64,000 nt of DNA from Oopsacas minuta (lineage: Eukaryota; Animalia; Porifera), in NCBI GenBank assembly GCA_024704765.1, contig JAKMXF010000015.1, positions 1 through 64,000 on the forward strand. Reading direction: 5' to 3'. Shown here in pieces: positions 1,808-53,841 of the stretch. Each line of letters begins with the position of its first letter. The stretch's first letter is position 1. The translations under genes were made by a program, and so were the position numbers. Under the pieces are notes generated by a model. That model was not told where the DNA came from. It saw only the letters and a list, made by a program, of their open reading frames with translations, and searched no databases.

Positions 1808-3010
1808 TCAGTATAGTTGGGTTGAATAAGGTTCAACACATATTTTCAATAGGAGAGAATCACCACCTGAGAATTTAGCTTGTCTAACTAAATCATGACT
1901 TGCGAATACGGTGAATCCTCTACCTGGTTTTACGTCATCATCTGGCTTATGGAAATTCTTGTCATCTTCACCTCTTACTTCTACACTGCGTATCTTGTTC
2001 CTATTCTCCTTCTTCTTGTTAATCATTGAGAATGTGAATCTTCCATTAAAAGGCCATTTTAGTTCATCATCCCATTCCCCTTTGACCACACGTACATATA
2101 CCCCTATTACTTTCCTGCTTCTATCGTTCAATTCTATGATAGCCTGACATTTGTATAGACACACATAGAAAGGTTCACTCTCTAATCTAACCTCCTGGCC
2201 ACCTTTCAGTTTACTTTCCAATTCATTGATTTGCATTACAATTGTTCCATTTGTGTTACGCATTATGGTGGATTCTAACCTCTTAATGTATGAATTCAAA
2301 CATCTGAGATGCTCGCTTTGATACACATTTTCGTGTTCCACCATTTCGTTACGAGCTAGATTCACTTCACAGCCTGAATGACTGTATACACAATTAACAA
2401 CAGCTAGCTTGCATTCCTTGTTGATATGTTGTTCTAATTCCTTACGTTTCATTTCATTTGGCTGGCAATCATTCGGACACATTACTGGATGTTCTGTACA
2501 CTCTAACAGATGGTTATCCATGTCTGCTACCTTCAAGTTATCTGAGCAGTATGCACAGCCTACCATACGGTTTTCGCATTCATTTTGAACGTGTTCTTCT
2601 ACTTCATCTGGTAACAGCAACTTTTCACAATTCAGTTCACAAGCTACTGGGTAGAACTCACAATTAGCTAGATGATCCTCTATAGTACTGATGGTCTCTT
2701 TACGCTCACATCCCTTATGTCTCATAGGGCAGAAAACCTCAATGGTATCGATAGCCGGCTGTTCCACTCCAACCGTATTCTTATCATCACCCTTTACACA
2801 GTTAGAGCACTTGTAACCTTTCTCAGTAAACATCGTCCCTCTCAACACTCCCTTACAGCTACAACATACTACATACTTTTCTTCTAAATCACTGAGATCT
2901 CTCACTAATAATTCCTTCTTCAATCCGCCGTATTTTGGGTTCTCTTCATCTTCACTGATTGGAACATAAATCAGTTCGTCTTTGCTTATTTCCCGTGTGC
3001 TTGTGCTCAT
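1808..3010 (-). CDS. TRAF-like protein (degenerate RING, TRAF zinc fingers, coiled coil, MATH domain), 400 aa, intronless
   Basis: CxxC..CxxC remnant RING; repeated CP..GC..HL..C/H..EC zinc fingers; MATH motifs SEPFYV, KGEWDDELKWPF, GRGFTVF, DSLLLKICV. True ATG at 3010 (ORF track starts at a TTG). Confidence 0.9.
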   Translation of the reverse strand: MSTSTREISKDELIYVPISEDEENPKYGGLKKELLVRDLSDLEEKYVVCCSCKGVLRGTMFTEKGYKCSNCVKGDDKNTVGVEQPAIDTIEVFCPMRHKGCERKETISTIEDHLANCEFYPVACELNCEKLLLPDEVEEHVQNECENRMVGCAYCSDNLKVADMDNHLLECTEHPVMCPNDCQPNEMKRKELEQHINKECKLAVVNCVYSHSGCEVNLARNEMVEHENVYQSEHLRCLNSYIKRLESTIMRNTNGTIVMQINELESKLKGGQEVRLESEPFYVCLYKCQAIIELNDRSRKVIGVYVRVVKGEWDDELKWPFNGRFTFSMINKKKENRNKIRSVEVRGEDDKNFHKPDDDVKPGRGFTVFASHDLVRQAKFSGGDSLLLKICVEPYSTQLY

Positions 3011-3149
3011 TTCTCCCAACTATATTTTGGGTAATTAATTTATAATACGGTTTTTATACTTCCATATGTTACCACTCCAATATAAAGTGTTCGCCTATTG
3101 TTCTTACGAAATCTTCAATGTATTCAAACACTATGGCTTTACTGTATCT

Positions 3150-3470
3150 GGTAGGTGTTTGACAGATTGTCGCAGGCGATTACAACGAATTGAATCCTTT
3201 AATGAAGTTTCTACTCGATTTAGGTAAGGCCTGAATTCCATAGCTGATGTATTCAATTGATTAAATGACGAAGTAATTACTACAGCATGGGATTGGTATT
3301 TTTTATAATATATATTGGTTTCACTATTCTGAGTATTTGTATATTTATGTTATCCTGAAGTAACAGAAGTAAAATTTATAAATTCTGGATAGATTTCGTA
3401 CTACTGCTTCAGCTAATACATACGCTTGTGGTTGTAATTTAATGGATAATGTATTTGATAATCTGTGTTC
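3150..3470 (+). pseudogene. Decayed LRR-receptor relic (tentative)
   Basis: RRRLQRIESFNEVST resembles GLRRIETFET, and NTYACGCNL resembles the LRRCT DPFICDCKL of the 58528 gene; frames broken. Confidence 0.3.
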
Positions 3471-4044
3471 TGGAATTGCTTGAGTGAATTATTAAAACTC
3501 CAATATTGTATTTAAAATTTTAAATATCGAGGAATGATATTCTCGATATTTTATCATTTTTAGATAATCAGATGATATAATTGTAATTCGATTTCACTTT
3601 TCGAAAAGTATGTCTTAACCAACTATAAGTCTTAAGCCGAGTTTTACTGTACCTTATTGATGATATAACTTAATGACTATTGGTGTAAACTCAGAATTTG
3701 TTTTTATAATATCTTTATTAGCAAAACACATGTTGTAGTATATTTATACCACCAATATTCAATTATACACTGTCCAGTTTGTTGTACAGTTTTTGAACTT
3801 TACTGTCTAGGTCACCCTACTCCTAATGAGAAACTTGTTTCAGCTCTACACAAGATCCACCTGAACATGCATGCTTGCGGGCTGGCTGCTCATTATCATT
3901 ACCACATTAGGATTATTTCCTGACATATCATAGGGAAAATTGATTTATTCATAAACAATATTCAAATGACTAAGTCAAATTTGATATTAGAATGTGATAA
4001 ACGAAGAAAAGTAATCTCTAATACACTCTTAGCTAGTTTATATA

Positions 4045-4287
4045 CACTCCCTGGCCAAAAGTATTGGAACACCCTGCCACAATTGACACCTGGCGCCAAA
4101 GGCATGTTACCTTAGTTGTATACTAATAGGCTAAAGGTGATCTTTAAAATATATAACTTAAATATATCATAAGCAACGAATGATAACACGAAATTGTCTA
4201 CTTTCTGCAATTGCATAGAATCTTTCAACATATTAATCCCTTGTGCCACAAGTGGTAAAGTGTTCCAATACTTTTGGCCAGGCAGTG
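4045..4287. mobile_element. Tc1-type MITE (243 bp) between the TRAF genes
   Basis: TA|CACTCCCTGGCCAAAAGTATTGGAACAC ... GTGTTCCAATACTTTTGGCCAGGCAGTG|TA: 28-bp TIR with 1 mismatch, TA target duplication. Confidence 0.9.
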
Positions 4288-4652
4288 TACTTTAATACAC
4301 CTTGTAGTTTAATTACATTGATGAAAGCGAAATAATGACAAAAATTCTAAAAATGACAATATTCGTGAGTTGGCGAAATCAGATGCGGGCGGTGGAGCTG
4401 AGACATGTTTCTAACTAACAGTGGCCTAATATGTTTCAAATCCACATTATAATATAACCAATTGTGTCTCAATTATAGTTAAAGATAAGAACTTTTATTT
4501 AACACATATAAAACATAATGAAGACATTAATAACAATGCAAGAATACCGTAGATAAACCTTGCCCGCTATCTACAAAGTAAATGAAAAAAACTATAATAC
4601 ATAACCAGTATAAAATGTTAAATTACCTCTTGGGGGGTAGGGTGCTATGAGA

Positions 4653-5945
4653 TTAGAATTCTACAGGTTCAGCAGTACACTCAACTTTGAATTCAATATA
4701 AATAGAATCGTTCTTACAGTACTTCTCATCCACAACCTCTGAATGCTTCATGAATGTAGGAATACCATATCCGTCATTCCGTGTGTTCACAGGTCGCTGG
4801 AATATGTGTCTCCGCTCGGGTAGTTCTGACGTGTTTAAGATCATGACGTAGTTATCGCTTTGACTCCTGCTACCGAGTAGTGTGAATGAATACATGCCCT
4901 TTAATGGCCAGGGTACCTTATCGTCAGAATCCCCTCGCATCAAGTACAGATACACACCGATAAAGTTAGCATTCTTGTCGTTGAACACTACCATAGCGTG
5001 GAATTTGTATAAACCTACGTAGAAAGGCGGTCCCTTCATTGCATAGTCACGATCATGTTTTTCACAATCTTCTATCTTCTTGCTGACACTATCAAACACT
5101 AATACATAATCTCCTTTATAAGAAGACACAATCATTTTCATGAGTACATCTTTACTGAGGTCGTAATAGCCTGCTATCCTCAAGATTTGATTCTCTTCTT
5201 TCAGCTTAACTACGTCGTTCTTCAATCGATTCATTACTGCATTCATTTCATTTGTTTTAGCTTCTAACTCGAATATCTTATCTTTATCCATCTCGTTCTC
5301 ACTGCGTAACATTTCGAGATGATCTATAGATTTATCATTCACGTGTGTTTTCAATGCTTTCCGCTCTACCATTGCCTCACAGCCGTATTTAGCATATACA
5401 CAGGGAACCACAGCGAATGGACACGAATTTATTGTATGTATTTTCATATCTCTTTTTCGTAACATCCCAACTCCGCAATTTCTTTCGCATTCGATCATTA
5501 CTTCTTCACATACTCTAGAATGTGTCTCAATATTCGCTCTCTCCATCACAACTCCGCAACTCCATTCACAATCCAACAGTACGTATTGACACATATCTAA
5601 ATGATATGATACCTCACTGATTTTACCTTCCCATTCACAACCTCGTGTTTTTAATGGACAAATAGAATCCAAGCCTTCTATCGCGTTATCAGTCACAGTG
5701 AATGGAATTGTATTTCTGTTGTTTACATCTGTACAAGGTTTACACTTTTGTATGCCTTCACTTGTTACATGCGACTCTCTTAACAAACCCCCACACTCAA
5801 GACAAGAAAACATTTTAACTTCCTCTTTCGTCAATTCACGTGATAATAAATCTCTTTTGTATCCACCATATTTGCCTTCTCCTTCCATAAAATGGTATAC
5901 CAGTCTAGGCTTTAAATCTGGAGCCACTATATTTTGTGTTGCCAT
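4653..5945 (-). CDS. TRAF-like protein (degenerate RING, TRAF zinc fingers, coiled coil, MATH), about 430 aa, intronless
   Basis: CLECGGLL..CKPC; CPLKTRGCEW..HLDMC; MATH motifs GPPFYVGLYKF, RGDSDDKVPWP, GYGIPTF, NDSIYIEFKV. Likely ATG at 5945 (MATQNIV). Confidence 0.9.
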   Translation of the reverse strand: MATQNIVAPDLKPRLVYHFMEGEGKYGGYKRDLLSRELTKEEVKMFSCLECGGLLRESHVTSEGIQKCKPCTDVNNRNTIPFTVTDNAIEGLDSICPLKTRGCEWEGKISEVSYHLDMCQYVLLDCEWSCGVVMERANIETHSRVCEEVMIECERNCGVGMLRKRDMKIHTINSCPFAVVPCVYAKYGCEAMVERKALKTHVNDKSIDHLEMLRSENEMDKDKIFELEAKTNEMNAVMNRLKNDVVKLKEENQILRIAGYYDLSKDVLMKMIVSSYKGDYVLVFDSVSKKIEDCEKHDRDYAMKGPPFYVGLYKFHAMVVFNDKNANFIGVYLYLMRGDSDDKVPWPLKGMYSFTLLGSRSQSDNYVMILNTSELPERRHIFQRPVNTRNDGYGIPTFMKHSEVVDEKYCKNDSIYIEFKVECTAEPVEF

Positions 5946-7117
5946 TTGGAATTTAATTTGAATTCCAAATCGTTTTGCCTTTTTAATATGAAATGTTCTC
6001 AATGATTTGTAGGCTCAATCTATAATTATACTTATTATACTATTCTATATGGTTACTATTTGTGGCACAATTATTGCAATGGTTAATCTATATCAATTTC
6101 ATATTTTATGGATTCTGGTGTAGTTGAACTTTTTCACTGAAAGAAGATAGCCGTAATAATGCTCAAATATTAAATATTACTATACTATTGCACACATGGC
6201 TATTACATAATAGTATTTCTATGTAATTTATCCGTGTTACAACTTCTGTCGTGCAATATTCAATAACATATTCCTAAAGGTTTAACTGTTGATGTAATAT
6301 AAGTAATGTCTTATTCAATTCTGTAACTACGGATATTATTTCAATACAGAAATGAATGCTATATATTGCAAACTGGGTTTTACAATATTAGTGGTATATA
6401 CTCGTATATTATGGTATTAATATATGGATTGGTGTTTTAATCAGAAGATCGATGTATGAATAATTCACAATTCAAGGTATTGAACCCTGTTATGAATTAC
6501 TAATCATGAATCTGTTTATATGAATGTATACTCTAAATCTAAAAATCTCTGGGAAGTTAATTTTGTTCAATTTATATATCGATTAGGCTTAATTTATGAT
6601 TCCTGGAAGGTTATTTATGTAATAATTCATTGATATATTCAAATAATATAATTGTAAAATCGACATTTTAAGATGTTTTGGAGATTTCTATTTTACAAAA
6701 TCAACTCTTTTATGCATATTTTATATGTTGGATTATACAGAATTAACATTATTAATGTTGGCTATGTAAATCTACGAGTTTACAAAATCTATCTGCTATA
6801 ACTAGTAACAGAACTATTAAAATATCAAAAACCAAATCAATACAGATTAGAATCAAGATTCACATGTTTAACCTTATAAACAATCCTTACGTATAATGCT
6901 AACGATGATGAGTTATTGCTTCATTTACAATGATTTGCTGGACTAAAACTATTGTAAATATTAATATTAGTATTACACAAGATTGAATACAAAAGATTCC
7001 TCTATTTTGATTTTAATATTTAATAGTATAAATACACCAACGATTGAAATAACTATAAATTTTTAATACGATCCTCATAGCTAATAATTCTACTATCAAT
7101 AATGATAGTATTCTTCC

Positions 7118-10214: not shown

Positions 10215-13200
10215 ATGGCAACATCTTCAGCAGGCACTGGGACACTGAAAGGTGAGTAATTGACTCTATATTTGTACAATAGAATACGATATTTAGCATT
10301 TATTACAAAATAGCAAGCAAGCTTAGTTTACTATGCGGCTGGCGAACCCTCCGCTGAAGGGACCATATGGATTCGTCTTGTATTCATATTGATTTACTAT
10401 TGTACATACATTCACTACATACATATCGCCCTGGATTAAATAACTAAAATTACGGTTCCATGCAACACTCTACTAGCTCATTAGGAATATTTAGCATAGT
10501 TATGTTTATTCGAGGTGCATTTTAATAATATTACAAGTTGGAAACATTATGTAATTATTTGCATTCAGATTAAACTAAAATTGGCCATAAAATTATTAAT
10601 TTCTGATTAAGTTTACTAATTCATTGAAAAATCGTCAAGAAAATTCTTTTTGAAGAGTTGACTAATTTATGTGTTTATATAATTCATAATGATATTGAAT
10701 AATATATGCCAGTGTCGCGAATTCTGAACCACTAGGGGACTAGAGAAACTGTTCGTAATATAGAGAATTCATATTTATCAACTCGACTTAATACAAATCC
10801 TATTTATCTCATGTTTAAGAGAATACATAATTGTTCACACTGTTGCAAGTACCTTATTTTCAATGCATAATTTCTTCATTTTCGCATTGATTCATCTTAG
10901 GGTCCATTATTTCTGAATTATGAGGTTTTCTTCATTTTAATGCATTATTCTTCTATTTGTTTTATGGAAAACAACTAATTATTCCCTAAAGTGTTTATAT
11001 TTGAATATGCACACTTTAATAAGAATAAATAATATCTAATTCAAAATAATTATCTCATCGGAATAACGTAATTTGTACCTTTAAAGCTATTTAGATTATC
11101 AAATCCGATTTGTATCTGTGTGTATGTTAAAACTCTGTATCAAATATTCTATGTTGAATTCAATCTCGCATTTCCGAAGTCTAAATACAAACATGTACGT
11201 AGCACATTTAAATTCAAAGAAATTCGATAAAAGTTGTTAAAATATATCACAGAAGTATATTCATATGGTGAAATCAAGGTTGTTATGTTTATATTTGTTG
11301 CGAATTCATTCATAGATTTTGCGATGTTCACAATCCTCAATTAATTCTAGGCACAAAGTGCAGAGAAATATTTCTCTTACAAGGATAATAGTAATAATTA
11401 TATTTTCAATGCCTTTAGTTATACCTGTACGTAGAGTTTCATTTGGCGGGGGACCCTAAATTTGGGGGGAACCGTCCAAATACAAAAGTCTTTCAAAACA
11501 TTTGGGGAAGTCTCTCCAAATTTGGTGGGCCTCCTCCAAACATATCTTTTTAACTATATTCATTTTATTTAAGTAATTTGAGGTGAAATCTCTTCAAATA
11601 TTTTTGAGAATAATATGGGTTTGTAACGCAATATTCAAAATGTGTGATATTCAAAAGCATGCTAGAGATTAGCGTTCAACATGCCGTCACAGCACAGGTA
11701 GGTCCGCATTGAGAAATTCACAGATTTTTCATATGAGTAATCATGTTTTGGCGCCTTTAGGCTTATACATAGCATGGCTTATACTAGAAATATATATTAA
11801 TATATTAACGACTAATCATTATTCATTGGGTAGAAGCATGACTCAGAGGCCCCACCCTGAAATTATCGCTATATCCATTATCTACTCTAGTAACATTTTC
11901 ATTGACAGAAAGTCCTTTGTTGAATGGTATTGAGCTACAAACCCATATTCTTTTCAAAAAAATAAAGATTTTGGGAGACTTCCCAAGTGCAGATTCAAAA
12001 ATGAAAATGAGAGGGGGTCTCCCCAAAGGGGTTCAAATATTTTTGTATTTGGAGGAGTCCCCTCAAAAAAACCTTCATATCGAGTATCATATCTACATTA
12101 CTTTGTCGAAAAATTCACTTTTGGAGGGAGGGTATCGCATTTTTGTAGGCCAGCAAAGGCAACACTGACTGTTTGATGCAATGGTTTATTAAATAATTAA
12201 TTGTAATAATTGATTATGTCGAAATAAGTTTATTTATATGAATTAAATAACAAATACAGTGCAACCTCTATATGTGGGGTCTCTATAATGGGGAACCTCG
12301 ATAAGCGGTGCAATTTTGGTCTACCTTCATTTATTTACATAGAAACGAACCTCTATAAGCGGGGAATTCTACGAAAATTTTCTGGGATAATCAATTTTTG
12401 TTCTAAATTTGTGATGAAACACATATTTACGTATTTATCGCTATGATGAATTGAAATTTTTGGGTTTCTCAGAAAAAATTTCTTACAAATGTTCATATTC
12501 AACCAACACCTTTGGGCATATTATAATAATCAAATTTTGTTGAAATGCCAGTCGTTAGATGAAGTGGCTTTACCTTTGACTCAAATATGTCTCGTTCGAG
12601 GACATTTACATTTGAGATTATAAATGGGGAATGAGGGGTTATCTGGAGATTCGCCGACCCGACCTCCCCCTCTTATAGAGGTTCTACTGTACACAGCAAT
12701 TTGTATCATAAATTCATTTTCTAGGCTCAGAATTTGCGGGTAAATTAGACCAAGATGCGTTTCTCTATTCTAAAGTATTCCATAAGATTGATGAAAATAA
12801 ATCTGGAGTAATGCCAGATATTGTTAAGAGATTGGCTAGTACACAATCCTTCACATTCAAACTTCCTATTAAAAAAGCTAAAGACTTAACAACTATCCAG
12901 AATATCAGTACATTAAAGGAAGGCTTACAAACTGCTGTAGAATTAGAGATGACTGTCATGTTTGAATACCTTTTTGCATGTTTTAGCGTTATAAATAACT
13001 CGGATGAAGTTAACAATGAGCCCGGAGCCCTCAAGGATATGTCACCATATTTATCTGAACTAAGGCGAGAATATAAGAACCAATTCATGATAATCTGTAT
13101 TCAAGAGATGCAACACATGAGCATGGCCATAGATATGCTAATTTCAATTGGTGGCATGCCAAACTTACAGAAAGTTAGCTTTCCATCTGAAATAGGTGTA

Positions 13201-15720
13201 AGGGATGCGAAATCAGATTTAATAAGACTAAACCTTCAATCATTATTCATGTTTGCAAAGAATGAGGAACCTTACCCTGATTCAAAAACAACTGCTGATA
13301 TAATACCAGAAATACCATTGACTCCAGCTACTGATGTCGACGGATTTCAATACTATAGTATTGCACAGCTGTATGATGCCCTCGCTGACGGATTTCGTTA
13401 TGTCCATGCACAAATCGGTGATTCAATGTTTCTAATCAATCCGCTAATGACAAATATGAGCCAAACTTATACATCCCTGCCTAAGGTCCTAGAAGATATA
13501 GACATCATTCAAACAGAAGGCGAAGGTGCTAAAGGTGGAAAACTATTTACTACTATTATAAGTGACATTTTGGTGTGGATTTCAAATTTCGCTTTAGTTG
13601 ATGGAACTCCTGAGAATCAGTTACGAAATGAAATTATCAAGCTATCCAATGCTATCTTATCAGACCTGGACGATTTGACAAAATTGCTTCCTAATATTCT
13701 GGAATTAATACAGTTAATTGAGGAATTTCGAGAGATTGAGGATATTAAGCTTCCATTTGATTCACCCATCTTTATTACGTTGAAATCTATTCAGCCATCA
13801 CACTGGGGAAGGTTTTTAATGATGATAACAAATTATTTGATGTTAATGGATGAAACATTGCAAGTGGAAAACGAGAATAAAATTTCGGCAAATTTTTCCC
13901 GGCCTTCAAATCCACGACCTGATGCTGGCGGCTACCATCCTATCACACAAGTAATTGTTGATATGACCAATACATCATATCATCTATTACTCAAAATACT
14001 TGAAGGAGTTATCATCTCAGTGCCTGATGAACTGAACGCTACCTACGATATAAGTGAACGATATAATAACATAAAATTCTATCCTATAATGTCCATCCTA
14101 ATATATCCATTAGGCGAAATTTTAAGTTATTTCCAACTAAACAAAGTAGGCGTAGATGAAACAGCAGGATTCCCATTCGTTCCTAATACCGATGAACCAC
14201 TTATTACCACACCTCTTGAGAAGTTCTTTGATGTTATTTTAACATTGAAAAACCTATATAATCAAAGCCTGAAGCTGAATCAGGCATTCTTTGACAGCTT
14301 AAAAGATTGTGTAGGGACTTGGGTCAAGGATGCTAATAAACAAAAAGCCATTGTTGATCGTGTTTCATATATACTCGAAAAGATTATAACTAGTATTAGG
14401 GTGCTCTATCTAGGATTTTCAAACGGTATTCCACTTCCAACTCCTGCTTCTGGTACTACTATTACCGCTAAAGCAAAACCTAAAGCTAAAGCAAAACCTA
14501 AAGCTAAAGCAGCAAAACCTTCCAAACCCATTAGAGACAAATTTTATCTTAATGTTGAGTACGACGGATACGTTATATACAGTATGGCAACCGACAACGA
14601 TCCAACATTTGAAACCAGAGGGTTTAATGGTAATCAATTCATGTTCGAATACAATAATGATCCTGATTTCACGGATGAATTTCACACACAAAATACACTC
14701 AAACAAGGTGACAAGCCTTTTACAAGAGACTTTATCCCCGAGAACTTCTATAAGGGCGTAAAGGTAACTTCTGCTAATTTAGTTCCTCCTTCATATTTGA
14801 CTGCAGAAGAGTTACATAACTTAAATTTTGAAGAGCTACAACTGGCAATTAGAGATGATTTCATTAAAAACCCGACTGATTTCCGTTTTGATTCTATGAC
14901 CACGAATGACGTGAAATCTTACCCCAAATTTAGCCAATTAAATTATGCTCTAACTAGGCAAATTGGAATAGATCCAATCAATGTTGGATTCGACACGAAA
15001 AGTTTCACTATCTCAAGGGCGAATCTATTATACGATGAGAATATGAACGTTGTGGATTACGAAACGGCTTGTTTAACCGTTAGTCAAAACTTTGGTAAAT
15101 ATCCTGAAGCTGCAAACGATCGCATGCCTAAGAGTGGTGGATATCTTGATTGGGCTAATCCATTTTATGTAAATAATGGGCTATTAGCTAATACTAATCG
15201 GATTAATTCGAAAACTGGCACAGGGCAATGCCTCGCTGATCTTCTTAATAAATACGAGAAAAGGGGAGAAGCAATAATGAAAGAGATCAATCCGATTATT
15301 GCAAACCATCCTAACGATCCATTAGTACAATTAATTCCTACTTTCCTAAAATATTATCCTGAATCAAAGTTGATTTGTATTGCACTAATGGTCAATATCC
15401 CGGATCCTGCTGTTAAGAATAAATTGTCCTATCTCTGTACTAGATACTTAAACGTTGTAGCATTGATTGCAGCTGGAGGTATAGCTGGTAGCCGTCAGTG
15501 TTTTTATCATGTACCATTAAATGGTCCAAAGGAAGAAGACAAAGCAAACCACCTGGTAGCAATCAACAGAGCCACAGGACCATTGTCTGCTATTGAATTT
15601 GATAAAAATCAAGAATGGTCTGCTGACTTTTGGGTTGGAGGAGTGGATTATGATGCGCTCACATTTTACCTATCAGGAAGCTTAATGATCCCAGTCTATT
15701 TGAATCCACCAAGCCCGTAG
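10215..15720 (+). CDS. Two-exon 1010-aa gene, join(10215..10251,12725..15720): bacterial-type ferritin-like domain (PF12902, VioB/RebD/StaD-related) + K/A/P linker + uncharacterised C-terminal domain
   Basis: Motifs LQTAVELEMTVMFEYLFACFS, IQEMQHMSMAIDMLISIGGMP, FAKNEEP, YSIAQLYDAL, IQTEGEG, SHWGRF, TAGFPF. Exon 1 MATSSAGTGTLK-G ends AAAG|GTGAGT (phase 1); acceptor TTTTCTAG|GC at 12724 is also phase 1 and opens a stop-free frame into the 969-aa ORF. Confidence 0.8.
11445..12150. mobile_element. Foldback/MITE-like element with G/C-run-rich subterminal inverted repeats, inside the intron of the ferritin-like gene
   Basis: TCCAAATACAAAA pairs with TTTTGTATTTGGA; GGGGAAGTCTCTCCAAA pairs with TTTGGGAGACTTCCCA; boundaries approximate. 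Confidence 0.5.
12257..12689. mobile_element. pogo/Tigger-type MITE in the intron of the ferritin-like gene
   Basis: TA|CAGTGCAACCTCTATA ... TATAGAGGTTCTACTG|TA. Confidence 0.8.
14467..14520 (+). repeat. 18-nt coding tandem repeat (AKAKPK)n linker
   Basis: GCTAAAGCAAAACCTAAA twice plus a variant third unit. Confidence 0.9.
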
Positions 15721-16055
15721 TATTTGGAATGGTCATACTAGTGCTCTTCCTCTTTAGATGTGTGTTAATATGTGTGTTTACTCGTAGTTCTTCTTTTCTA
15801 ACAATTTTAGATTTGTTTTATCCCCAAACATTTGCTATAAATATTTATAGCTATTTAGTGTGTATTATGTATATATCCTATTACCTTTAGATTTCATGCA
15901 TCTTCTTGCTAAAGTTTTGAAATATTTTTATTGTGTATTTTGTTGATTTGATGAGAAGGTAATTTATTATTTCTTAGTATGAATTGAAATCTGTCTAATA
16001 AGTATATTACAATGGAACCCGCTTAACCTGAACTACCGAAAAGCCATGACTATCA

Positions 16056-16230
16056 TACTTAAATCTTTTGCAACATCTTCTAACTATTTTCCTGAATATT
16101 TTATCCCGAAATCTATGGATTTCTAATTTTAAATGAAAAAAATTATTCCCTAATCTAGCAGAAATTTCCCAAAAGTAGCCAATACTTTCCCTGGATTTTG
16201 TAATTTTCCCATGGGTAGTTGACAATTGTG
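16056..16230. mobile_element. Degenerate member of the CATAC-TIR MITE family
   Basis: Starts CATACTT and ends GTAGTTGACAATTGTG; internal TTCCCTGGATTT motifs shared with the 22226 and 62234 copies. Confidence 0.3.
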
Positions 16231-19016
16231 GGATACGCGCCGGGTGTAGCACTCCACGAATTTGAAAACAACATTATTAAATAGACTTGAATAAAGTCGA
16301 AGGTATCATCTTCACGAAAGAAACTGCGTCGATGCCCTTATTCAAGGAAATACAGTATATTCCAATTCTTCTAATTTATTTCGTATTATTATTATTGTAT
16401 GCTACTCGCCTTAAGAATTGTTTTACCATTGTTTCAAATTGTCATAGTGCCATGTGTTTGTATTGTGATACTAAAAGGGGTAATAGTCTAATACAACCTG
16501 TACTTGTGGTGGGGAACAATGTATTCAATCTTAGTGGCCTAATGTACGTATACATATTATCCAACCCTCGCGATTTCGTTCAATTATGCCGACTCACATA
16601 GCAAGTACCTTCGGGACCTATGTTACTTATTTAATGTCCCTATTTCACCCAATATAATTAAATCAAATTTTAAATTAAATACTCTCCGACCCTTTTATCG
16701 TAGATATTATCCCAAATTGGTTTTAATATGCGTCGCGAGCCTTCAATACCGAATTGATCTATTTTATTCCGATACTCTACGTATTATAGATTTCTCTCAA
16801 GGCCAAATAATCGCGAAAGTTGGTTGAGAGTCACTTCTTCACATCCCATATGCTTAGGGCATTTTTGTACTGAAATATACTGATCCTCAGAAATTCGAGT
16901 CTAAAGATCAACACTTTTAACCATTAATGCTCTGCTGAAATTGTACTATACATTGCCTGCCACGCACCTAAATACACCCTGTCCCGATATAGCCCTATTA
17001 AACTATTGTACTAAAAAAAGAGTCCCAAAGGGGAATATCTCACCCTAGGGCGAGATGTCCTGGGATAATTGACGAGAAATAATTTATCAACTAATTCGAT
17101 AGATATCCCTCTGTCACTGCCATTAACGCTTCAAAGCACGTAACCTCACAACAACCACAAGGCAGCCAAGAAGTCCGGGCCAACATAGACACTAATGCAA
17201 GCCAAAATTCCAAACAACAAATACTTATTCTTTCACTAATACGACAAAAATCCTTCCACTAAAATAGACTTTCTAATATTGAGTATATTTGTGAATACTT
17301 GAATAGATAAGGAATTATTTTGTAAAACTTGAGCAGATTCAGAATTTCACTTATTTTGAAGTTCTTTATAGACAGATATTTCGAAATATCCGAAATTTAC
17401 TGTATTCAGCAGTATCTTCAAAGAATTATACCTACTATCCTAGTGTATGTCTTCTTCTAATAGGGATATTACATATATGCATGGGAACTAAATTTGGTTA
17501 AAAAAGTAATACATGTAACAATGTCCTATATGTTGTAACTACAGTCCACCTATGGAACTAGATCCTATTAGTGAATTGTATATTTTGCCCGAGGAAAGAA
17601 TCGGAAATGCATGGAGAGCTTCGAGTAAATCATCTCTTTCTTAATTATTTTGTGATCTAATAAGTCAGAATAATTTCAATATAATACATATATATGCCAT
17701 AAACCTGACATACACATCTTCTCTAATTTCGTCTAAGAATTTATTAGCAAGTATGATTTAAGCTATCAGTTTAAGTTACATTTCAAATAACAACATTCCA
17801 GTCCTCCTCCTCAATATTTGATACTCTCACAATTCTGGAAAAAATGTATCTTTCAATGTGGATATTACTGAGGCTATCCGTAGCAAGGCATCATGTAACT
17901 AACAACTATTACTCCATTTTTGAAACATTGTGATAAAGTATAATGTTACTGCAGTTGTTGCACAATAATATTAATCTCTTAGTGACCCAATTAGACTAGA
18001 ATACTGTCCATAAGATTGATATTACCACCAGTAGATCTAATAGCACCAAGTACTAAATATTATAATTCAATGGGAATCTTACAGATCACTGATCTAATAG
18101 TGACAAAACATAATGTATTTATTTCAAAAATCAAGAAAAAATCATATTTTGATTTTTAGCGTGATTTTAATCATATTTTAAATCAAACAACTCTGATTAT
18201 TCTTATTCGGATAAGACATATACTATGATAGTACTTATTTAATTATGTTCCAAAAAGTGTACTTCTTATCAGAGTGCTACTGTATATCTTTTAGGTGCCT
18301 AACTTTCGTAGGCCTGGGGCACAGTACCTCTAGTGTCCTATGGATAATCCGGCCCTGTATCCGTGGGTAATTGTACACAGGGTCCGAGTACACAACAACT
18401 ACAAATATATATATACAATGGATGTGTAAATTTACAAACTAAGTTCTTAATAAAATTCCCTAAATAAGATAATAATAATAATTTCAGTTTGAGTTTGGGG
18501 ATTTATAGCTTGTTTTGTCTAGAAATATACTTGCGAGTTTGGACATCTTGACTATACTTGAACATGTCTCTCATATAATTGGGGAGTAACCAATTCAAAG
18601 ATTTATATACACCTAGAGCAATCTAGTGTTCTCAGTAACGATTTAGAGCTTACTCCAATATCTTTGATATTTAATATTATTCAAGCTGATCTCCTCTGTA
18701 GTTTTTCCAGTTTATCTATGCTCGAGCAACTACCCCATGCGGTTATTGAATATAATATGGTCAAAACAATTGTGTGTAATGAAATGTTTTCCTTGTTTCA
18801 GTTGGTAAATACTTTTTATCTTTAATAGAAGAGACAATTTACGGTTGATCACTGATAGAACTGATTCTATCTGTTGTTTCCAACTTTCCATAGTGGATTA
18901 TTATCAATAATTACGTAACCTATTATGCAAAGTTACGTTTTCAAAACTAACTTTTAGAAACGTTTGTAGGATCAGGGTGAGCGTTAGTTAGGATGATTTG
19001 GGAACAGTTCATTGTA

Positions 19017-31464: not shown

Positions 31465-32748
31465 ATGGCTACTGCATCAATCAACGAGAATCCTGTCTGT
31501 GGACCTGTTAACTTGATGCCAGTCCCTAACAAGCTACAGGACAGAATGAATACACTGAGAGAAGTGATTGATAGCAAGAAGTCACTCGTGAGAAGAGTCA
31601 GTGAAGAAATGAAAGAGCTAATTGAAGACAAGGCTCACTTGATTATCGGGGAATTGGAAGGTATCTGGGATGAAGCTAACCAAAGGATGAACAAGAGAAG
31701 AAATGAAATCAATAAACAGATAGAAGAGATAAACAAACGTAAAAGTGAACTGGAAAAACTCTTCCAAGACTTAGACCCATCTCTACCCAATCCTCTTGAC
31801 AAGATACCTGAAGCAATAGAGTCAGTGAAAAGAGAAATGAATATAGACATCCCTTTTATCAAAGTGAATTGTAAAGTGAGAGAGTTGAGAGAGAGTATCA
31901 ATACACTGTTTAGTTGTGATCAGAGAATTGTAAAGTTTGAAGAAAACACTCCTATTCAACTGAAATGGAGTTCTTGTGACAGAGGCAAGCAAGATAATCA
32001 ACTATATAATCCATATGGTATAGCTATTGATTCTATTAATGATGATATTTATGTAGCAAATTCCATACACAGAGTAGAGATATTCTCTAGAAATGGAGAA
32101 TGGGTTAAAACTCTCAAAGATGAAGTAATGGCTTGTCCAGAGAATATCCTCATTCTACATGACTCTATATTTGTACAGTGCGTTAAGAGAATAGTTAGAT
32201 TCAACAAATCTACCCTCAAGATGGAATCTCATAAAACTTACGAGTATCGACTATCAGGTATCTGTAATGACAATACACATATCTATGTGGGTGAATATAG
32301 GAATATGAAGTTAACAGTCCTAACCTCTGAGATGAATGAAGAAAAGAGAATATCTCTAATCACTCAATTCAAGCAAGATAACACTTTTATCACAGATATA
32401 TCACTAACTAAAGATGAAGTATACGTTTGTTTCATTGACTCAGATTATCCTATACAAGCTTTCTCTAAACAAGGCAGACTGACTAGATGTATTATACACA
32501 AAGATATGTTGAATAAGGTTTGGTACTTCTGTATGGATCAACAACTAAATATAATACTAGCAGATAGAGGTTGTTCTCAAGTCAAGATATTCTCTAATGA
32601 AGGGAAACTGATTACTAAATTCGGTAAGGGCGGACCAGCTCCAGGAGATTTCACTTATCTAGGTGGAATAGCAGTAAATGACTTATTCAATATTGTAGCA
32701 GTAGACTGTAAAGATCATAACAGACTACAAGCATTCTCATATCTGTAA
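31465..32748 (+). CDS. Coiled-coil + NHL-repeat (beta-propeller) protein, TRIM-NHL-like but lacking RING and B-box, 427 aa
   Basis: N-terminal coiled coil; NHL motifs GKQDNQLYNPYGIAIDS..IYVAN..HRVEIFS, IILADRGCSQVKIFSNEGKLITKFG..G.APGDFTYLGGIAV. Confidence 0.88.
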   Translation: MATASINENPVCGPVNLMPVPNKLQDRMNTLREVIDSKKSLVRRVSEEMKELIEDKAHLIIGELEGIWDEANQRMNKRRNEINKQIEEINKRKSELEKLFQDLDPSLPNPLDKIPEAIESVKREMNIDIPFIKVNCKVRELRESINTLFSCDQRIVKFEENTPIQLKWSSCDRGKQDNQLYNPYGIAIDSINDDIYVANSIHRVEIFSRNGEWVKTLKDEVMACPENILILHDSIFVQCVKRIVRFNKSTLKMESHKTYEYRLSGICNDNTHIYVGEYRNMKLTVLTSEMNEEKRISLITQFKQDNTFITDISLTKDEVYVCFIDSDYPIQAFSKQGRLTRCIIHKDMLNKVWYFCMDQQLNIILADRGCSQVKIFSNEGKLITKFGKGGPAPGDFTYLGGIAVNDLFNIVAVDCKDHNRLQAFSYL

Positions 32749-52560: not shown

Positions 52561-53841
52561 TTACAGATATGAGAATGCTTGTAGTTTGTTATGATCTTTA
52601 TGGTCTACTGCTACAATAGTGAATACATCATCTACTGCTATTCCACCTAGATAAGCGAAATCTCCTGGAGCTGGTCCGCTCTTACCGAATTTAGTAATCA
52701 GTTTCCCTTCATTAGAGAATATCTTGACTTGAGAACAACCTCTATCTGCTAGTATTATATTTAGTTGTTGATCCATACAGAAGTACCAAACCTCTTCAAC
52801 ATATCTTTGTGTATAATACATCTAGTCAGTCTGCCTTGTTTAGAGAAAGCTTGTATAGGATAATCTGAGTTAATAAAACAAACGTATATTTCATCTTGTT
52901 AGTGATATATCTCTGATAAGAGTGTTATCTTGCTTGAATTGAGTGATTAGAGATATTCTCTTTTCTTCATTCATCTCAGAGGTTAGGACTGTTAACTTCA
53001 TATTCCTATATTCACCCACATAGATATGTGTATTGTCATTACAGATACATGATAGTTGATACTCGTAACATTTATGAGATTCCATCTTGATGGTAGATTT
53101 GTTGAATTTAACTATTCTCTTATCGCACTGTACAAATATAGAGTCATGTAGAATGAGGATATTCTCTGGATAAGCCATTACTTCATCTTTGAAGTTAACC
53201 CATTCTCCATTTCTAGAGAATATCTGTACTCTGTGTGTCGAATAATCTGCCACATAAATCTCATCATTAATAGAATCAATAGCTATACCACATGGATTAT
53301 ATAGTTGATTATCTTGATTGCCTCTGTCACAAGAACTCCATTTCAGTTGAATAGGAGTGTTTTCTTCAAACTTTACAATTCTCTGATCACAACTAAACAG
53401 TGTATTGATACTCTCTCTCAACTCTCTCACTTTACAATTCACTTTGATAAAAGGGATATCTATATTCATTTCTCTTTTCACTGACTCTATTGCTTCAGGT
53501 ATCTTGTCAAGAGGATTGGGTAGAGATGGGTCTAAGTCTTGGAAGAGTTTTTCCAGTTCACTTTTACGTTTGTTTATCTCTTCTATCTGTTTATTGATTT
53601 CATTTCTTCTCTTGTTCATCCTTTGATTAGCTTCATCCCAGATACCTTCCAATTCCCTGATAATCAGCTGAGTCTTGTCTTCAATTAGCTCTTTCATTTC
53701 TTCACTGACTCTCCTCACGAGTGACTTCTTGCTATCAATCACTTCTCTCAGTGTATTCATTCTGTCCTGTAGCTTGTTAGGGACTGGCATCAAGCTATCA
53801 GGTTCACAGACAGGATTCTCGTTGAATGGTGCAGTAGCCAT
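52561..53841 (-). pseudogene. Inverted recent duplicate of the NHL gene at 31465, frameshifted
   Basis: Near-identical protein over 316 aa; 2-nt deletion near 52897 gives a stop at 52891; a further 1-nt deletion near 52795 restores the frame. Confidence 0.9.

Follow-up and report, generated by a model that had tools for sequence, protein, structure and literature searches.

Among described proteins, the closest relatives of the gene considered here are VioB, StaD and RebD, the bisindole synthases in which an N-terminal domain of ~290 amino acids (aa) precedes a ferritin-like half. The gene lies in a stretch of 64,000 nucleotides from the glass sponge Oopsacas minuta (contig JAKMXF010000015.1, positions 1 to 64,000; hereafter the window), where a single open reading frame (ORF) on the + strand at 12811–15720 encodes 969 aa. 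Its total length is similar to that of VioB/StaD/RebD, whereas its domain order is opposite, with the ferritin-like half in front. A first-pass annotation of the window had asked whether it is a circularly permuted or operon-fused VioB-like protein, and had offered the fusion of two adjacent bacterial genes in reverse order as one explanation. The comparison reported here indicated that the protein is very probably a bacterial ferritin-like protein and its partner, fused in their native order and captured once by glass sponges.

The StaD-like reference was taken from a sta/reb-type cluster of Nocardiopsis flavescens, found by a plasmid search, which contained genes for a P450, a glycosyltransferase, a flavin adenine dinucleotide (FAD) oxidase, a 1079-aa 'VioB' and a FAD monooxygenase. 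The reference set comprised 120 StaD/RebD-like proteins, together with 34 intact and diverse VioB-like N-termini from 39 metagenome loci. The N-terminus of the VioB-type members reads FPR(L/I)HFxG(F/W/T)xxxxxPTG...N. The plasmid searches yielded no proteobacterial VioB, and no VioB/StaD/RebD-type protein with a solved structure was found in sequence and fold searches of the PDB. Our literature search found nothing relevant on VioB structure or AlphaFold analyses, or on gene transfer into Hexactinellida involving ferritin-like genes.

The two halves and their bacterial counterparts

Both halves of the sponge protein were encoded in one unbroken frame. The ferritin-like half (12886–14433, + strand; aa 26–541) comprised a PF12902 domain and a helical extension bearing FYPIMSILIYPLGEIL. 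The Pfam match to PF12902 (Ferritin-like) extended over aa 39–242 (nt 12925–13536) and covered profile positions 1–201 of 221, with 76.9 bits (E 2.6e-21) against a gathering score of 22.3 bits. A low-complexity interdomain linker rich in K, P and A followed at 14434–14532 (+), and it contained the AKAKPK repeat stretch AKAKPKAKAKPKAKAAKP (aa 553–570; nt 14467–14520). The C-terminal half (14533–15717, +; aa 575–969), which was delimited by exhaustive hmmsearch and hhalign and is called here the 'TDPDP' domain, had zero matches in the Pfam scan. It opened with the motif LNVEYDGYVIYSMATDNDP (aa 580–598; nt 14548–14604), so that the succession of linker repeat and motif within one ORF, as described in the first-pass annotation, was confirmed. 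Thirteen full-length homologues of the sponge type were found, with 43–66% identity and both halves present in all of them; their linkers were K/P-rich throughout and varied in sequence and length.

A word-index search with the C-terminal half alone gave no matches. The exhaustive HMMER search with a profile built from the 13 sponge C-terminal halves (alignment A2) returned 85 matches, ~75 of which were stand-alone proteins of 260–460 aa, and most of the stand-alone proteins were hit in two stretches, at the extreme N-terminus and the extreme C-terminus. Two matches (P0075, 750 aa; P0081, 1134 aa) were themselves fusions with PF12902 at the N-terminus and the partner domain at the C-terminus; both were found on bacterial-type metagenome contigs, and a P/K-rich linker also connected the halves of P0075. 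At L013:10082–13317, the gene for P0081 had as neighbours a class III/IV lanthipeptide synthetase gene (RamC_N, Pkinase, LANC_like) as well as two small ORFs (72 and 79 aa), a context that possibly hints at a link to peptide modification.

The pattern (F/Y)xG(W/Y/F)x6(T/S)DxDPxxxxRGxxG was conserved in 13 of 13 sponge-type homologues and in the ~75 stand-alone bacterial-type proteins, and the motif thus stood far above chance. In the bacterial family, whose free-standing members measure 260–350 aa, the N-terminal signature read hxFxGWxQCRLATDPDPxDEPRGVSGYTFA (generalised as hxFxGWxxxxxxTDPDPxxxxRGxSG), and the C-terminal one read WxxxFWxGGWDxDxLxGYxxGxLxIP, with LxxY for LxGY in its generalised form. 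Both were kept in the sponge domain. The first corresponded to an extended form of the motif, LNVEYDGYVIYSMATDNDPTFETRGFNG (14548–14631, +), which was conserved in sponge-type and bacterial-type members alike; the second, WxxDFWVGGxDYDALTFxxSGSLxIP, lay in the last beta-hairpin (15616–15693, +), and the homologue alignment showed W936, W941, G943, D946, D948, G956 and P961 to be invariant. In hhalign, sponge aa 577–966 aligned with columns 4–285 of 297 in the 65-member bacterial-type family (probability 99.5%, E 6.8e-23), which amounts to a full-length alignment of the C-terminal half to the stand-alone family. Judged by these alignments, the sponge motif is a divergent form of the N-terminal signature of the bacterial family, and 14533–15717 encodes a divergent member of this uncharacterised bacterial protein family. 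The bacterial-type members are ~100 aa shorter than the sponge half, and the alignment was sparse over a helical stretch; from the lengths and the family alignment, the extra length of the sponge half appears to lie mostly in that stretch and in the low-confidence stretch preceding it.

The gene order around the bacterial members was examined by a scan in which a single genome represented each species; it used a closer alignment (A4), because alignment A3 was too diverse for this purpose. The scan gave 52 loci, which belonged to Actinomycetota, Chloroflexota, Gemmatimonadota, Myxococcota, Pseudomonadota, Bacteroidota/Rhodothermota and Planctomycetota. At 49 of these loci, the partner gene began just where a ferritin-like ORF, encoded on the same strand, came to its end; of the remaining three, one was cut by a contig end, one had a partial match of 26 residues and one had no ferritin-like ORF. 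Bacterial homologues neighbouring PF12902 genes, the check that the first-pass annotation had proposed, were therefore found with the ferritin-like gene directly upstream. The metagenome loci showed the same arrangement. At L016, a 455-aa PF12902 gene (1084–2451) overlapped the start of the partner gene P0020 (2448–3383), which was followed by a FAD_binding_4/BBE oxidase gene (3407–4966); at L017, a 458-aa PF12902 gene preceded the partner P0021. Upstream genes cut by contig ends (L001 and L007) carried a FFPLMTMFIRPVGEIL helix, the equivalent of FYPIMSILIYPLGEIL in the sponge N-terminal half. This half also aligned over its full length with the ferritin-like protein of the module (aa 26–527 against residues 17–440 of the 455-aa protein of L016; probability 97.9%, E 5e-13).

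The adjacency in 49 of 52 loci and the end-to-end alignment of both halves showed the same order, ferritin-like protein then partner, in the bacterial pairs, in the two bacterial-type fusions and in the window ORF, and we therefore read the sponge protein as the pair fused in its native order. The first-pass annotation was borne out in deriving the gene from two adjacent bacterial genes and in placing the junction at the low-complexity linker, which occupies the position that the stop and start codons have in the split pair. The reversal of order that it suggested was contradicted, since P0075 and P0081 are already fused in the sponge order.

Compared with the bacterial two-gene module (PF12902 protein of ~450 aa plus TDPDP protein of ~290 aa), the sponge protein keeps the R/G/G of the RGxxG loop, the GV pair and the W, W, G, D, D and G of the C-terminal motif. 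It differs in being a single polypeptide with a K/P/A linker and a partner half longer by ~100 aa, in being encoded by an intron-bearing gene, in its strong divergence (a stem branch of 3.5) and in the loss of R19 of the bacterial motif. The sponge gene also lacks the adjacent genes for a BBE oxidase and a STAND-type ATPase. In the bacteria, a BBE/FAD_binding_4 oxidase lay directly downstream of the pair in 10 genome loci as well as in L012 and L016, i.e., in about one-fifth of the bacterial loci (the BBE-bearing loci were L012, L016, L018, L021–L027, L029 and L032). A homologous large ORF was found upstream in 31 of 55 loci; the scanned members (L064, L012 and L016) carried AAA_16 and/or TPR domains, and among the scanned large ORFs one had a guanylate-cyclase domain and one had a kinase-like N-terminus. 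A role in anti-phage defence was considered and rejected, since PADLOC matched neither the pair nor the fusion nor the BBE oxidase and gave a kinase-like hit only for the upstream STAND-type ATPase. Outside this family, a radical SAM gene flanked by two PF12902 ferritin-like genes was observed on a Nostoc plasmid (NZ_CP151101, L010:5001–9842), where the partner family was absent.

Relationship to VioB, StaD and RebD

The ferritin-like half of the sponge protein was also homologous to the C-terminal half of StaD/RebD (hhalign probability 96.8%, E 2.6e-10, 357 columns). StaD/RebD residues ~653–1050 aligned with sponge aa 26–~514, well past the PF12902 domain, and the two shared ELxVMxxYLxA, xEMxH, GEG and an (F/M)xPxMxxxIxPLxE helix. 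The carboxylate and histidine positions of StaD/RebD were kept in the sponge half as ELE..EYLFA, QEMQH, NEEP, GEG and SHW. In the tree of the ferritin-like half, the six StaD/RebD rows were separated from the 57 rows of the sponge and pair-family sequences with a Shimodaira–Hasegawa-like approximate likelihood ratio test (SH-aLRT) value of 100. The sponge sequences formed one clade (SH-aLRT 100) within the pair family (SH-aLRT 91). The tree thus places the protein as a relative of the pair family and not as a rearranged VioB.

A deeper relationship may lie behind the shared ferritin-like module. The sponge C-terminal half and its bacterial partner family could be remote homologues of the ~290-aa N-terminal domain of VioB/StaD/RebD, in which case the two families would combine the same modules in opposite order. 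This kinship is possible and unproven, with the chances for and against it about equal. It is compatible with the native-order fusion described above, to which it would add a deeper link. The two domains are equal in size and both partner the same ferritin-like module, and three weak matches between them were colinear. The first was hxFxG(aromatic)..PT at both N-termini (positions 8–23 of the hidden Markov model against StaD 8–23); the second joined 68–98 to 89–120 with a score of 15.4; and the third paired WxxxFWxGGWDxDxLxxYxxGxLxxP with WxLRGTIAPWxxxExRTYPAGRLLxP (253–291 against 256–294), while the best weak StaD match of the sponge C-terminal signature fell on StaD residues 256–289. In hmmsearch, real StaD sequences in every case exceeded reversed or shuffled decoys, though by only a few bits (best 4.9 against –1.9). 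The secondary structures predicted by AlphaFold2 (AF2) agreed at 0.537, compared with 0.399±0.055 in shifted registers (1 of 94 shifts was as high), and at 0.333 against 0.14±0.055 when only structured positions were counted (0 of 94). The AF2 models of both domains also gave weak whole-domain matches to one fold class, the dirigent/Diels-Alderase-type beta-barrels, with entries in common, and both proteins possibly contain a dirigent-like barrel domain.

None of the profile comparisons was statistically significant (hhalign probabilities of 0.07–2.8%). Against the full StaD alignment, the best local match of the C-terminal half had a probability of 0.07% (E 0.7), and against StaD 1–300 the score was 14.1, compared with 10–26 for the shuffled, reversed and off-target controls. 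Adding the 34 diverse VioB-like N-termini raised the score of the third match from 14 to 25.6 (E 0.016), with a probability of 2.8% and 1 of 40 block-shuffles as high. No protein of VioB length matched at its N-terminus in the exhaustive search, and neither the 65 bacterial-type members nor the sponge domain, taken alone, matched the VioB model TIGR04492 at E≤10. TDPDP..RGxSG was absent from the VioB family, just as WGHYNEYL and NRARVFDxDP were absent from the partner family. The resemblance to a VioB N-terminus noted in the first-pass annotation survived in part: hxFxG(aromatic) and PT were common to both families, whereas DP was not a VioB-family feature; likewise, the proposed check against VioB-type N-termini gave profile scores at chance or borderline level, while the weak motif matches were colinear and the secondary structure agreed better than in shifted registers.

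A more far-reaching proposal was also considered, in which the partner is a free-standing relative of the VioB/StaD/RebD N-terminal domain, the bisindole synthases are built from the same modules in the opposite order, and glass sponges adopted the sister module as a single-chain enzyme, abundantly transcribed, for the oxidative coupling or cyclisation of a small aromatic metabolite. We put this forward tentatively, as a little less probable than the domain kinship itself.

It is very unlikely that the sponge protein is a functional iminophenyl-pyruvate dimer synthase of the VioB/StaD/RebD type that makes violacein- or indolocarbazole-like bisindoles. The homology of its N-terminal half to the C-terminal half of the VioB family and the UniRef label of an Oopsacas paralogue ('iminophenyl-pyruvate dimer synthase domain-containing') would favour such a function. 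TIGR04492, however, scored 13.2 bits against a cut-off of 1250, with aa 23–64 aligned to profile positions 594–635 in place of a full-length match. The ferritin-like domain and its helical extension were present in the sponge N-terminal half, with only ~60 residues ahead of the ferritin-like domain; the N-terminal region of ~640 aa was thus missing there, and the StaD middle region of ~340 aa had no counterpart. The tree placed the protein outside the StaD/RebD clade. There were no vio, sta or reb genes nearby, and the lack of a tryptophan-oxidase partner in the window, which the first-pass annotation had noted, held: Pfam on ORFs of at least 150 aa and tblastn with a StaO-like query detected neither a FAD amino-acid oxidase of the VioA/RebO type nor a BBE-type oxidase in the 64 kb. 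Among the bacterial relatives, the neighbouring oxidase was of BBE and not of VioA/RebO type, and partners such as VioC/D/E, StaP or StaC were absent. Membership of the VioB family is, on this sequence evidence, largely refuted.

Intron, transcription and genomic setting

The homologues were longer than the ORF at the N-terminus by ~70 residues, and homology to their N-termini began in the window frame at ~12718–12733, upstream of the first in-frame ATG (12811). The missing start was found in a separate exon. Exon 1 (10215–10251, +) comprises ATG and 12 codons (MATSSAGTGTLK) and ends after the first base of the following codon; its MATSSA agreed with the start of the homologues from Vazella and Oopsacas. 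It is followed by a spliceosomal GT..AG intron of 2473 nt in phase 1 (10252–12724, +) with the donor GTGAGT, read as aaAG|GTGAGT at 10251/10252, and the acceptor ttcattttctAG. Exon 2 (12725–15720, +), which was defined by homology, the ORF and read depth, holds the remaining coding sequence including the stop, and the phases of the exons were compatible (g + gc = Gly).

Four public runs held the locus. Three of them were DNA-like, with an even depth of 50–150 over intron and exons. In the fourth (X4), the depth was ~1e5 on both exons and fell to 0–26 across most of the intron. The same run carried a GT..AG skip of 2473 nt (10249→12723, with the cut offset by +2) that corresponded exactly to the joint 10251|12725. 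The exon-level depth of X4 crossed the linker without a dip, and both halves therefore appear on one transcript. The fusion gene is transcribed and spliced in the sponge. Inside the intron (window 10640–10810, 11630–11770 and 12250–12660), all four runs showed spikes in depth, short skips and numerous loose ends, a pattern expected of repeated elements. The glass-sponge silica proteins hexaxilin and perisilin were considered for the restriction to glass sponges and the deep coverage of X4, and were rejected, because ferritin and a bacterial origin both go unmentioned in the paper describing them.

The ORF had a GC content of ~35%, matching the rest of the window, and its neighbours were TRAF-type, NHL, EGF/LRR and major facilitator superfamily transporter ORFs along with transposase remnants. 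The named homologues were all from glass sponges, namely Oopsacas minuta LOD99_8382, and Vazella pourtalesii transcripts; the other full-length homologues were located on eukaryote-sized contigs, and an Oopsacas homologue lies among animal genes. The animal neighbours, the intron with its splice joint, the Vazella transcripts and the Oopsacas gene among animal genes identify it as an animal gene. An artefact, whether bacterial contamination, a chimeric assembly or two genes misread as one ORF, might be suggested by the bacterial ancestry of both halves and the low-complexity junction, and it can practically be dismissed, since the unbroken frame, the GC content, the spliced intron, the contigs of the three DNA-like runs that span the junction, and the 13 full-length homologues, which come from eukaryote-sized contigs and a sponge transcriptome, all stand against it.

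On a eukaryotic contig of 2 Mb, two sponge-type genes (L015:8001–10985 and 14519–17530; 994 and 1003 aa) were inverted relative to each other, with 3.5 kb between them, and adjoined a leprecan-type prolyl hydroxylase gene; the pair looks like a recent local duplication. Elsewhere in the window, two intact TRAF-like ORFs (zf-TRAF plus MATH) formed a tandem pair on the – strand (1808–3019 and 4653–6002), and two paralogous ORFs in which an ApoLp-III-like N-terminus is combined with NHL repeats (31465–32748, +; 52891–53841, –) were inverted, ~20 kb apart.

Predicted fold and proposed role

In the AF2 model of the C-terminal half, the N-terminal signature formed strand 1 and a low-confidence loop, and a helical bundle (helices H234–313) occupied domain residues ~228–320 (15214–15492, +). 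The structure search with this half was dominated by the helical stretch, and barrels emerged among the hits only in the second-look list. The half weakly resembled dirigent proteins, allene oxide cyclase and beta-barrel Diels-Alderases (AtDIR6, GePTS1/PsPTS1, AbmU, PloI4, AbnU and PyrI4). For neither model did Foldseek find a PDB entry at E≤0.001, the ESM Atlas feature search returned sub-threshold phage-capsid clusters only, and the fold search of the same resource gave template modelling (TM) scores ≤0.29.

Several points weigh against the capture of a fused bacterial pair by glass sponges. The partner family had no match to any Pfam, NCBIfam or PADLOC model. The sponge clade was biased in composition and stood on a very long branch (3.5 substitutions per site), which prevents a donor lineage from being named and leaves the nesting of the sponge sequences in the pair family only moderately supported (SH-aLRT 91). 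The AF2 model of the C-terminal half was of moderate quality (predicted local distance difference test score, pLDDT, 67), and the conserved TDPDP loop was of low confidence. Run X4 is not recorded as RNA, and its RNA nature was deduced from the contrast in depth between exons and intron. Set against the conserved gene order and the end-to-end alignments, these points leave the native-order fusion and its single capture highly probable.

The sponge gene is thus very probably the bacterial pair connected through the K/P-rich linker; glass sponges took it up a single time, and the phase-1 intron and several paralogues arose afterwards. The ferritin-like half is probably the redox half, with a di-iron or haem centre, as its conserved residues suggest. 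The partner half, for which the prediction is a beta-barrel carrying long insertions, probably binds or steers a reactive substrate or product. By analogy with the step from VioA to VioB, the BBE-type FAD oxidase of the bacterial loci suggests a two-step oxidative pathway in which it would feed the metallo-oxidase.

Together, the bacterial loci describe a widespread and previously undescribed two-gene module, in which a PF12902 ferritin-like protein is combined with a partner from an unnamed family and is often followed by a BBE-type flavin oxidase. Glass sponges keep a fused copy, splice it, duplicate it and strongly transcribe it. To our knowledge, few bacterial enzyme systems carried whole into an early-branching animal lineage have been described. 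What is new is the union of a PF12902 enzyme with a partner domain not described before, in a fused form that an animal has retained. If the partner family is indeed related to the VioB N-terminal domain, the split pair would be a tractable model of oxidation and directed coupling, and the product of the sponge enzyme could be a new natural product or represent a cross-linking chemistry.

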